Source: Dimorphilus gyrociliatus (lineage: Eukaryota; Animalia; Annelida). Taken from it: DNA of 64,000 nt. Made by a program: the position numbers and the translations under genes. Each line of letters opens with the position of its first letter. Positions within the stretch are counted from its first letter, which is position 1. Positions 21,578-25,927 of this stretch are shown here, piece by piece. The stretch is taken from positions 682,001-746,000 of the forward strand of contig CAJFCJ010000006.1 of NCBI GenBank assembly GCA_904063045.1, in the 5' to 3' direction. Below the pieces are notes generated by a model that saw only the letters and a list, made by a program, of their open reading frames with translations, had not been told where the DNA came from and ran no database searches.

Positions 21578-22580
21578 ATGAACATGATTCGAAGAAATAA
21601 CCCTACATCTAAAATTTTAGCATTAGTTGCTGGTGGGGTTTTATTACTATTTGTTATTTATATCTGGCATGATACTTTAGGGCGCTTGAGAAAAAGCGAA
21701 GAAACAAATGAACATTTGAACCAACAGCGTGATTCTCTGTCAGCACAATTGAGAGGTACAAGTATAAAACTGCATGGTATATAGTTATAACCCTTTTGCA
21801 TTATAGTTATATATGAACATAAAAGTAAGCTGGAGAAATCTTTACGAGATGATCGACAATCTTTTAAAAAATTCAAGACAGGTAATGTCAATTAAATATA
21901 GTCATCATATTATTTATTTTATTTTAACTAAACTATGTAGAATTGGAGGAAAAATCAGGTGAAACTGAAAAAAAGTTTTCTATGGAAAAACAAAGCCTTC
22001 TAAGCAAAATAGAAAGACTCAAACAGGACTATAAAATGCTTCAGGTACAAAAATTTAATTTTCAGTTTGTTTTTTGTTCACTTCCTGCTGATTCCATTTA
22101 GAGTCAACACCAAGATATGGAGAGTGAATTTAATCGATTAAATGAACTTTACAAAAAAGATAAAACTGACTTTTCGGCTGAAAGAGACAAGCATCATAAG
22201 GACTATCTCAAACTTCGAGACTATGCTTCAACTCTAAAAGAAAGTAATGATATATTAAACAATAAGAATATACTCCTTGAAAATGAGTCGAAAAAGTTGA
22301 AGAATGAGGTTAATTTACAATTTTTTGTTTTCATTTAGTTTACGTTTATATTCCATAGATTCTTTCAAAACAAAGAGATCAGACCGAAGCCCAGCAAGTA
22401 AGTTGATAAAATTGGATTTTAAAAGCATATTTAATACTCAAAACAAAAAAAAACAAGTTGTTCACAAAAGCGACAAATATGTATAAATTAATAAATATTT
22501 CGCAACAGCGTCATCAACAACAGCAGCAATTGTTTCAGCAACAACAACAACAACAGCAACAACAACAGCAGCAGCAACAA

Positions 22581-22615
<35 letters not shown>

Positions 22616-22655
22616 ACAACAACAACAGCAACAACAACAGCAGCAACAACAACAA

Positions 22656-22690
<35 letters not shown>

Positions 22691-22706
22691 ACAAGAACAG
22701 CAGCAA

Positions 22707-22738
<32 letters not shown>

Positions 22739-23772
22739 ACAGCAACAACAGCAGCAGCAACAACAACAACAACAACAGCATTTCCAACAGCAACAGACTC
22801 AGGAAGGTTTGCAGCACGGACAAAATCAATCTCAAGATCACATTAAATCACTCCAGCAACCACAGTTGAATCTTTCTGCATCTCATCAGCTGTCAAAAAA
22901 TAACCCTGATGACAAAAGTTTTGCTAGGGATAGAAATGATGAGACTATTGGAGTTTGTATTTGAATTTATTTAAAATACTTGAAACTATTGATAACTTAA
23001 CTTTAGAAAATTCCGGAAATTGAAAAGATGATCAATTCTCAAGTCAAAGCGTCTAAACCTTCAATTCCTATAGCAGGTAGGTCGATAATTTGAATACTGC
23101 AAACTGAAATGAAGAATATGAAATCTAACAGGTTTCGGATCGACTAGAGATAAAAAGGATTCTCTACAAGAACTGAAGGAACAGATTGACCATAATATGC
23201 AATTAAGACAACCTGGTTCGTGAAATTTTAGTGAATCAATTAATTGAACTATCTTGAAGATATCTCTTCACAGTTGAAGATAGAGAGGGACCAAAGCTTA
23301 AGCAAGACCATCAAGTAAAGCCCCCCTCATTACAAGTTAGCTAATTGGTTTTAACTTCTTTCGAGAAGATAAATATTTTTTTGTTTTTAAGGACATAGAA
23401 GGTGATGATGATCGCAGAAGGCGTCAAGGTAGGCTTATTAGTTTAAGGAGATTTTACTCCATCTCCTAAGTTGATTGGTAGATTGTGGTGTTTTGATAAA
23501 TAGTACTTTCTAAATAGAAATCGCTGGAAAGTGAAACACCATTGTAAGGGTTTGTGCCGGCTGTATCTATGGATATTAGGAAATTCATTACTGTTTTATA
23601 TAAACTTGGGCAGAACGCTATATTTTTTATTTAGGATTAAAATAGCTATTTCGCTTTCTCCAATCAAGGGCATTCATTTTGTTTCCTTTTTAACTTTTTT
23701 TCATTTTTTCCAGAAGAAAATGGTGATAGGGATGACGTTTACCATGCTGATGATTTAAATATAAATGGTTAA
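21578..23772 (+). CDS. GOLIM4: Golgi integral membrane protein 4 (GPP130)-like, type II membrane, coiled-coil and polyQ
   Basis: N-terminal TM, then DSLSAQLRVIYEHKSKLEKSL (recalled GOLIM4 ESLSAQLQVVYEHRSRLEKSL), MLQSQHQD and an acidic C-terminus. Confidence 0.85.
22515..22797 (+). repeat. Mixed CAA/CAG trinucleotide repeat encoding polyglutamine (53Q-E-27Q core)
   Basis: 22536-22694 is 53 CAA/CAG codons, then GAA at 22695, then 27 more CAA/CAG codons (22698-22778). Confidence 0.97.
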
Positions 23773-24040
23773 GGAAAAGACGCAAACTAAACATCACGGA
23801 TAGAGGGAATCATTAACTTTTCGGATATAAACAAATCTATAATTATTTTTTTTGCTGTTCTGTACAATTTATGCTTTTTCTACCACATTACTAAAGCGGT
23901 TGTAGACGTTTCTAATTGTTGAAGCTGTGATATGTTCTAATTGTATACAAATTATATTAATGCAAAATTAGCTGATCTGTTGTACAATTAGAAGTGATAG
24001 TTATTATAACTCAAAACATTACATATTACAACAATCAGAG

Positions 24041-24854
24041 TCAACGTAAAGAATTAGCTCTTTCTCTTTGAATATCTAAGCTGCCTCTTCTTCCTATGAG
24101 GGATCCCCTTCTAGAATCGTTACCACCGCTATCATCCGAAGTATTCGATTTTAAGCTTCCTGACCTAGAGCGTGAAGGTCTTCCTATACTGCCAGACCTA
24201 TCTCGCCTAACTGCATAGGGATTGTTGGCAGCCTTTGCTGCTCCTTCCAAAATCATTTGAATTGTTCTGCTTTCGATTGCAGTTTGAATAAAATTTTCTC
24301 GTCGAATTTTATCGCTCGAGCTGGCCCTTTCAAAAATGTATTCAACAAGATCGTCTACATTTCCTTCTCCGATTCCATGTAGAACATTAGCTCGTAAGTT
24401 AGTCAGAGACTATAAGAAAAATGTTCAAATAAATATTCTAAATACATGACAAAGACTTAATATCTACCGTAATCATTTGTTTTACTTCATCCTTAGTTAT
24501 ATATTGCGTTCTATGAATATCGTACATATCGAATAGCCATAATAACTTCTGCTTTAGGGATCCCTTAAGCTGAATATTAAGTGTTAGCATAAATTGACGA
24601 AAATTAATATGACCTTTTCCAGATTGATCAAATGTTCGGAATACATGCTCAGCAAATTTTTCTGCGTCACCGTTGGGAAATATTTCACTGTACATTTTTT
24701 TAAATTCGTCGACGGTCATATGCATCTTTGATTTATCCTTACAATCATGCAAAAACTGACGATACAAATCACCAATCTCCTCTCTGGTGAATTGTGTCTG
24801 CTGTTCAAGATCATTAATGATTTCTGGCTTAAGAGTTGAAGTCTTGTTACCCAT
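24041..24854 (-). CDS. Neurocalcin/hippocalcin-like neuronal calcium sensor with degenerate EF-hands and an extended basic Ser-rich tail
   Basis: MGNKTSTLKPEIINDL, TQFTREEI, FPNGDAEKFAEHVFRTFD, GSLKQKLLWLFDMYD. Exons 24854-24468 and 24409-24041. Confidence 0.88.
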
Positions 24855-24988: not shown

Positions 24989-25927
24989 TTATTTCTTACG
25001 TCGAAAACACATAAAGCGATAAAAAACATTTCGAACAGCTTTACGAAAATCAGATAAAAGCCAAAAATAGACAATAGGGTTGAAAAATGAGTTGGAAAAT
25101 GTTAAAACTTTGCTGATTTCCAAAGCAGTAAATATCCACTTACTTATATTTTTTCTCTTTGATTCTTTAGTTTTATATATTATATTTAGCACTATATATG
25201 GTAACCAAGATAACAAAAATAAACACATAATTATAGCCATAGTTTTGGCGGCTTTCATTTCAAATTTTCGGCCTTTTGATCTTCTGGCTTCGTTTCCCAA
25301 AGTTCTGTCTAAGTTATGAACTCTCCTTTGTATTTTGAATGCTAGAACAAGCATTTTCAAATAAAGAACTTTGTTTACAACAACTGGTATTAAAAGGTGT
25401 GGAAATAGAATAAGGAAAAAGAAAAGACTTGGAAGCCAATTGCTCAGAGTACAAAAATGGTTTCGGTGACTATTGGTTTCTGAATTTCTTGTGAAGAAAA
25501 TGGAGGCTGATATTAATGGAATATATATCCACACCATAAAGAGCCAACATCTTGAGCGCCACTTTGTTATTAAAGTAGGGTATTTCAAAGGATAGTAAAT
25601 AGCAATATATCTGTCTATGGCAATTACCATCAAATTATACAAAGATACTCCACTTGAAGATAGAATGATATGTAAGCATGGATGACATAGTCTATGGGTG
25701 ATATGGTGAAGCCAATTCGTATTATTTAAAATATTATACAGAGGGTGAATACTTCCCATTAATAAATCAGACACTGCCAAGCTGATAGCCATTTCGTTTG
25801 TAGTAATACTAAATGTTTGAAACTTAGTAAAAACAATAATTGTTATAATATTTCCTGAAATAACCAATATTGTTATTAAAAAGTTTATCAATAAAATAAC
25901 AAAATGAAATGTTTTGGAAACTTCCAT
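24989..25927 (-). CDS. Intronless class A GPCR (adenosine-receptor-like or orphan, very short N-terminus)
   Basis: GN in TM1, SLAVSD in TM2, AIDRY in TM3, SWLP in TM6, NSFFNPIVY in TM7; 312 aa. Confidence 0.92.
   Translation of the reverse strand: MEVSKTFHFVILLINFLITILVISGNIITIIVFTKFQTFSITTNEMAISLAVSDLLMGSIHPLYNILNNTNWLHHITHRLCHPCLHIILSSSGVSLYNLMVIAIDRYIAIYYPLKYPTLITKWRSRCWLFMVWIYIPLISASIFFTRNSETNSHRNHFCTLSNWLPSLFFFLILFPHLLIPVVVNKVLYLKMLVLAFKIQRRVHNLDRTLGNEARRSKGRKFEMKAAKTMAIIMCLFLLSWLPYIVLNIIYKTKESKRKNISKWIFTALEISKVLTFSNSFFNPIVYFWLLSDFRKAVRNVFYRFMCFRRKK

Follow-up and report, generated by a model that had tools for sequence, protein, structure and literature searches.

Can a protein of the NCS family, whose members are textbook Ca2+-myristoyl switches, leave calcium control and come under the control of kinases? 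The question is raised by a locus in a 64,000-nucleotide stretch of the annelid Dimorphilus gyrociliatus (contig CAJFCJ010000006.1, forward-strand positions 682,001 to 746,000; the window), part of an AT-rich genome (~32% GC). The original prediction for this locus was a calcium-blind neurocalcin with a novel tail of kinase motifs, rewired from Ca2+ input to phosphorylation and 14-3-3 input. Loss of Ca2+ binding is well known among EF-hand proteins (S100A10, myosin light chains, EF2 of KChIPs); the literature searched for calcium-insensitive NCS proteins, or NCS proteins with all loops eroded, yielded nothing relevant.

The gene of DgyrCDS4322 occupies positions 24041-24854 of the window on the minus strand and consists of two exons, with a product of 251 aa:

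24468-24854, minus strand: exon 1, 129 codons, ATG at 24854; encodes the N-terminal myristoylation motif, EF1, EF2 and EF3.
24410-24467, minus strand: intron of 58 nt, GT..AG, phase 0, after ...KQMIT.
24044-24409, minus strand: exon 2, 122 codons; encodes the EF4 remnant, the C-terminal helix and the Arg/Ser tail.
24041-24043, minus strand: stop codon.

Database protein P0151, which is DgyrCDS4322 of Dimorphilus gyrociliatus, was compared with the two exons by script; its start corresponds exactly to exon 1 and its end exactly to exon 2. Upstream on the same strand lies an intronless 312-aa ORF (24989-25927, minus strand) for a rhodopsin-type GPCR with a DRY-like IDRY and an NPIVY motif, which ends ~134 nt before the NCS start. 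This adjacency is kept in L001 and L003, two assemblies that carry the orthologue described below; the gene found upstream there has a Pfam match to 7tm_1. GPCR signalling is known to be regulated by NCS proteins. Just downstream of the NCS gene, an ORF at 22458-22964 (plus strand) contains a very long polyglutamine run, of ~80 or more Gln.

We analysed to which family the protein belongs. Exon 1, compared with the PDB by phmmer, matched HPCAL1 (1.3e-39), neurocalcin delta (9.4e-39) and hippocalcin (E ~1e-39), and it also matched Pfam EF-hand families; the best PDB sequence matches of DgyrCDS4322 were 5t7c (2.2e-40) and 1bjf (1.9e-39). In an AlphaFold2 model derived from an alignment of 73 sequences, the NCS core had a pLDDT above 90, and the top Foldseek match of the model was neurocalcin delta (1bjf), with a TM score of 0.86 (by target) and 39% identity. 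The prediction of a neurocalcin/hippocalcin-like NCS protein was thus borne out by sequence matches and fold. The protein has the ~190-aa globular fold with four EF-hand helix-loop-helix units by which the family is recognized, and the last helix of the model is long (residues 177-201). At the N terminus stands the following motif:

24834-24854, minus strand: MGNKTST, N-myristoylation consensus with G2, S6 and no Pro at position 7; lipidation is predicted from sequence.

It agrees with the MGxxxS/T start of NCS proteins, and neither M1 nor G2 varies in the 24-sequence alignment described below. As predicted, the myristoylation motif MGNKTS is therefore kept, and DgyrCDS4322 would be N-myristoylated. 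The EF1 loop, HDCKDKSKMH, deviates from the canonical form: it retains Cys38, has Lys in place of Pro and carries an insertion of three residues relative to HPCAL1. EF1 thus appears to be disabled as in other NCS proteins, again in agreement with the prediction. Neurocalcin delta, hippocalcin and HPCAL1 (the VILIP class of NCS proteins), the best sequence and fold matches, share with DgyrCDS4322 the myristoylation motif, the four EF-hands, conserved hydrophobic core residues and the intron position after ...EIV/MIT. Unlike them, however, DgyrCDS4322 has EF2, EF3 and EF4 off consensus, the 3-residue insertion in EF1, Leu in place of Trp30 (in DLYRQF) and a C-terminal extension of ~60 aa.

Relatives were gathered by an exhaustive search with exon 1 and by word-indexed searches, which recovered 22 further full-length tailed proteins of 214-282 aa. 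With DgyrCDS4322 these make up a clade of 23 (the others being P0050, P0008, P0152-P0169, P0029, P0168 and P0177); the 24-sequence alignment consists of the 23 clade members and P0170. Common to the clade are an MGN start, DLYRQF, an EF2 ending in FRQ, and a C-terminal block of the form AAxxPYxxR[KR]xxxGSxG, which in DgyrCDS4322 reads:

24182-24232, minus strand: C-terminal motif that defines the family, AANNPYAVRRDRSGSIG, residues 189-205; it lies where the predicted helix 177-201 ends.

Within this motif A189, P193 and R197 are invariant, and A190, Y194, G202, S203 and G205 nearly so; position 198, also a nearly invariant column, is Lys in nearly all members and Arg in DgyrCDS4322. Basophilic Ser sites follow the block in DgyrCDS4322, and RRxS sites recur in the tails of its relatives. 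In a "short-tail" group (Dimorphilus, P0008, P0164, P0168, P0029, P0169 and P0177) the motif is followed by [KR]xxR[ST]xS[LFV], and in a "long-tail" group (n=16) by a linker rich in His, next RR[PG]S and, at the terminus, RR[PA]SLTPxMLDF. Long-tail members carry two to four, mostly three, [RK][RK]xS/T sites, which fall at three positions in the alignment. The last two of the three correspond in the alignment to the RRGSL pair of Dimorphilus; this match is tentative, because the region is of low complexity.

In quick maximum-likelihood trees the 23 tailed proteins form one clade (SH-aLRT 97-99), which adjoins a short P0091/Capitella group (including CAPTEDRAFT_226463) with consensus-type EF loops. 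DgyrCDS10709 branches near the base, without a resolved position. An SH-aLRT of 100 supports the branch that separates the tailed clade, the P0091/Capitella group and DgyrCDS10709 from a canonical neurocalcin-like and NCS-2-like group. These quick trees thus place DgyrCDS4322 outside the canonical neurocalcins, to which it had been assigned, in a clade of its own (SH-aLRT 99). A third homologue search, with a profile of the 24 sequences, found no further named family member, a feature search of the ESM Atlas returned generic EF-hand clusters only, and the tailed family is neither named in the source records nor described in the literature searched. The predicted tail of about 55 aa is present (57 aa), but it is not novel to this gene, as homologous tails are found in 22 relatives of one clade. 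Since the tail and part of the loss of calcium sites are common to about two dozen relatives, the idea of a one-off novelty private to DgyrCDS4322 has to be corrected.

The closest short relatives of DgyrCDS4322 are DgyrCDS10709, Capitella CAPTEDRAFT_226463 and the P0091 group. They share with it IQLKG, WLF/WAF..YD and a C-terminal EAxxSPF/Y motif. In contrast to DgyrCDS4322, they have a consensus EF2 and EF3, a near-consensus EF4 and a length of 194-210 aa, and end a few residues past the PF motif (three in DgyrCDS10709) with no phospho-tail. DgyrCDS10709 (P0206) is 46% identical to DgyrCDS4322 over 196 aa; as its loops are at or near consensus and it has no tail, the changes in DgyrCDS4322 can be read site by site.

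Among the best matches of the exhaustive search were also eight proteins of 1,660-3,072 aa (P0001, P0004, P0011, P0021, P0032, P0070, P0080 and P0087) with 9-12 separate NCS-like stretches each; every one is either a concatenation of NCS modules or a gene model in which a tandem array has been fused. In P0002 and P0003 a recoverin-like or neurocalcin-like N-terminal half is repeated twice; the probable cause is a wrong joining of gene models, with introns read through.

All named members are annelid: Dimorphilus in the tailed clade, and Dimorphilus and Capitella in the short sister group. The remaining family sequences are from marine samples that bear no taxon label. Eleutheroschizon duboscqi and Selenidium pygospionis are apicomplexan parasites of polychaetes. 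P0168 and P0177, taken from EukProt (TSA GHVT and GHVN), belong to the TSA projects of these two species (PMC10304595). Both are animal-type NCS proteins with a myristoylation motif, found inside protist transcriptome assemblies. As both species parasitise polychaetes, host contamination is the likely source, and P0168 and P0177 are most likely transcripts of contaminating polychaete hosts. To judge from its named members, the tailed family is probably annelid.

The evidence for transcription of the tail is indirect: it shares one exon with EF4 and occurs in transcript-derived relatives. P0168 and P0177 carry it in uninterrupted ORFs, and ~1 kb contigs from metagenome and Logan sources carry it in intron-free ORFs. 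The genomic loci (window, L001, L004 and L005) contain the intron, and the intron-free contigs are therefore spliced mRNAs. The intron position is common to the window, L001 (49 nt), L005 (~420 nt) and L004. L004:178-1226 (NCBI GCA_022702835.1) and L005:4500-5725 are genomic copies of the family with the intron after ...MIT/IIS; the second half of L004 is apparently split by at least one more intron, and the long tail of L005 lies entirely within one exon 2.

We compared the calcium loops of DgyrCDS4322 with the consensus ligands that NCS proteins have in EF2 and EF3 and, for the most part, in EF4 (D1, D/N/S3, D/N/S5, G6 and E12):

24594-24629, minus strand: EF2 loop DQSGKGHINFRQ, residues 76-87, with Lys at position 5 and Gln at position 12.
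24486-24521, minus strand: EF3 loop DIHRTQYITKDE, residues 112-123, with His at position 3, Arg at 4 and Gln at 6.
24293-24325, minus strand: EF4 remnant ASSSDKIRREN, residues 158-168, without Asp at position 1 and shorter by two residues than in every relative.

Read against these ligands, EF2, EF3 and EF4, the three normally active loops, depart from the consensus, and the individual changes are those that had been foreseen (K5 and Q12 in EF2, H3 and Q6 in EF3, a shortened EF4 that lacks D1). The Pfam EF-hand_1 score of DgyrCDS4322 is 31.5 bits, versus 71.3 bits for its same-genome paralogue P0206. Replacement of Glu by Gln at loop position 12 is a classic way of silencing an EF-hand. Gln stands at position 12 of EF2 in 19 of the 23 clade members, where position 5 is often Lys or Arg. 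The spread of Gln12 suggests that the loss of EF2 probably arose early in the tailed clade and that this residue is an old family trait. The EF3 and EF4 loops differ across the clade. They are of consensus type in some members, for example DADASGYVTKND and DNNQDGNISLQD in P0161, and are lost in others; the family as a whole is therefore not calcium-blind. Dimorphilus stands at the far end of the series, with all three loops off consensus, and only the added erosion of EF3 and EF4, which makes the erosion complete, is specific to the Dimorphilus lineage.

It is possible that DgyrCDS4322 is still a sensor of Ca2+ (or Mg2+) with a lower affinity, acting through EF3 and perhaps a reshaped EF2, in which case the tail would be an added, secondary regulation. 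EF3 retains D1, T5, I8, T9 and E12, Pfam still places EF2 and EF3 above the EF-hand threshold, and several family members have consensus EF3 and EF4 loops. However, His occupies the Y ligand position of EF3 and Gln replaces Gly at its position 6, EF4 has lost Asp1 and two residues, and EF2 combines K5 with Q12; in the PDB entry of recoverin E85Q (1omv), where Glu is likewise changed to Gln, the title gives Ca2+ only in EF3. We consider a lower-affinity sensor unlikely, and infer from the loops that DgyrCDS4322 is calcium-blind; its EF3 might keep weak binding of Ca2+ or Mg2+.

We analysed the C-terminal extension for kinase target sites:

24044-24214, minus strand: tail, residues 195-251 (57 aa), with 13 Arg, 13 Ser and a net charge of +8.

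All of the predicted motifs were found in it: three RxRxxS, namely RDRSGS, RSRSGS and RERANS (predicted acceptors S203, S214 and S249), and two RRGSL (predicted acceptors S232 and S239). When the tail was shuffled with its composition preserved, at least three RxRxxS/T motifs occurred at p=0.0185; for RxxS/T, of which the tail has seven, p was 0.007. In the AlphaFold2 model the tail is disordered (pLDDT below ~55 from residue 205 on), which would leave it open to kinases. With R-R-x-S followed by a hydrophobic residue in a segment predicted to be accessible (pLDDT below 55), both RRGSL sites have the form of PKA/PKG-type substrates. An SR-protein-like RS domain was also considered for the tail and rejected, as there is one short RSRS run only.

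An orthologue at ~80% DNA identity was found in Logan assemblies of three runs (L001-L003). In L001 the GPCR gene again lies upstream, the intron (49 nt) sits where it does in the window, and the stop is unchanged. The proportions of nonsynonymous and synonymous differences from the L001 orthologue were as follows:

Exon 1: pN 0.040, pS 0.705.
Exon 2: pN 0.078, pS 0.686.
Tail only: pN 0.062, pS 0.593.

Synonymous sites are thus close to saturation while replacements are rare, and the pN/pS of ~0.06-0.11, for core and tail, indicates strong purifying selection. The L001 orthologue shows no change in its EF2 and EF3 loops, its EF4 is equally shortened, and all five tail motifs are kept. So are all 26 Ser and Arg residues of the tail (13 Ser, 13 Arg), 13 of them with synonymous changes. 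As these motifs and residues are kept near synonymous saturation, the pattern goes beyond chance.

These data also bear on the possibility that the gene is a decaying duplicate (a pseudogene), or that the gene model is an artefact whose tail lies outside the real protein. The eroded EF loops would fit such an explanation, as would the fact that exon 2 alone has no match in Pfam or in the PDB. However, the frame is intact, the orthologue stops at the same position, pN/pS is low in core and tail alike, the tail lies in the EF4 exon, and transcript-derived relatives have a homologous tail. Exon 2 aligns with the C-terminal halves of relatives, and positions 22900-24040, checked for an alternative downstream exon with a canonical EF4, contained none. 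The pseudogene reading was rejected on the pN/pS evidence; purifying selection, together with the kept motifs and stop, excludes it and shows, at the level of sequence, that the tail is coding. Decay or artefact is thus extremely improbable.

The reading that we favour, and hold to be probable, is that DgyrCDS4322 is a lipid-anchored adaptor of the NCS fold, under little or no direct Ca2+ control and regulated by phosphorylation of its tail. The tailed lineage, a sister lineage of the neurocalcin/hippocalcin group and probably annelid, would have arisen by a duplication that parted it from a short paralogue whose EF loops are of consensus type; DgyrCDS10709 would be the same-genome copy of this paralogue. 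The tailed copy would then have gained its C-terminal extension: a longer last helix, with AAxxPYxxR[KR]xxxGSxG at its end, and then a disordered segment of repeated RRxS/RxRxxS sites. Position 12 of EF2 would have changed from Glu to Gln in most members, and EF3 and EF4 would have eroded further in the Dimorphilus lineage. The hydrophobic target groove and the lipid anchor would have been kept, with direct Ca2+ control weak or absent. A basophilic kinase of the PKA/PKG, AKT/RSK or CaMK type would phosphorylate the tail at multiple sites, which may change both its charge (+8) and its contact with the membrane, the groove or a partner.

Tail phosphorylation and its effect are proposed here from the motifs. 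RRGSL is of the type recognized by PKA/PKG, and RxRxxS of that recognized by AKT/RSK/SGK. Since RxxS is compatible with CaMK as well, an indirect action of calcium is still conceivable. The tail begins right at the end of the C-terminal helix, which in other NCS proteins sits at the target groove. AlphaFold2 gives no reliable docking position for the tail.

Alternatively, DgyrCDS4322 may be a constitutive, unregulated subunit or adaptor, the basic tail serving mainly as a second membrane anchor beside the myristoyl group rather than as a phospho-switch. The conserved myristoylation motif and the net charge of the tail, +8 in DgyrCDS4322 and positive in all members, are consistent with this. 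We consider it quite improbable, since it is the Arg-Arg-x-Ser positions and every Ser that are conserved rather than the charge, which is +1 or +2 in some members. The range of net tail charge across the family (+1 to +8) also weakens a purely electrostatic mechanism. As the positions of the motifs are conserved more than the net charge, specific recognition by a kinase or reader is favoured over a purely electrostatic membrane switch; such a switch may contribute in Dimorphilus, where the tail charge reaches +8.

It is also possible that the phosphorylated tail is a client of 14-3-3. R-S-x-S cores (RSRSGSL) and several RRxS sites would suit this, and many 14-3-3 sites have no Pro at +2. On the other hand, a search of the tail for the strict mode-1 and mode-2 motifs gave no match to R[SFYW]xSxP or RxxSxP, no Pro at +2 is conserved anywhere in the family alignment, and RRPSLTP has its Pro at +3. 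A 14-3-3 client seems rather unlikely. Of the rewiring that was originally predicted, the passage from Ca2+ to phosphorylation gains from the off-consensus loops and from kinase motifs under selection; the 14-3-3 part, with no strict mode-1 or mode-2 motif in the tail, is conjecture.

The favoured reading, of a phosphorylation-regulated adaptor, can be set beside known systems. KChIPs, also NCS proteins, bind no Ca2+ through EF1 or EF2 and serve largely as constitutive channel subunits. They are structural neighbours of the DgyrCDS4322 model, with a weaker sequence match (~1e-25); unlike DgyrCDS4322, however, they vary at the N terminus rather than the C terminus and keep a functional EF3 and EF4. 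S100A10 (p11) and the myosin essential light chains are EF-hand proteins that have lost Ca2+ binding and are conserved as functional binding modules. The likeness to them is a functional analogy. They come from other EF-hand families, and both the myristoyl group and the phospho-tail are missing in them. In plants, CIPKs phosphorylate the C-terminal FPSF motif of the CBLs, which are NCS-like scaffolds anchored by lipid. In MARCKS, a basic, Ser-rich segment accompanies a myristoyl group, and phosphorylation of this segment causes release from the membrane. With CBLs and MARCKS the likeness would be one of mechanism only, and no homology of the tail is implied.

The family offers a natural series, from a consensus-type paralogue through members with a silenced EF2 to a protein in which none of the three loops fits the consensus, and every clade member has a conserved tail with multiple kinase-target sites. 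The clade is thus a system for asking how an EF-hand sensor scaffold passes from ion control to kinase control, with DgyrCDS10709 as a built-in control from the same genome. More tentatively, it is possible, though less than probable, that throughout the tailed clade the phosphorylation of multiple RRxS sites in the C-terminal extension by a cyclic-nucleotide-dependent or other basophilic kinase replaces the Ca2+-myristoyl switch and controls exposure of the groove or attachment to the membrane. If this is true, the tailed proteins would form a regulatory class of their own among NCS proteins, and the dinophilid protein would be its fully calcium-independent end point.
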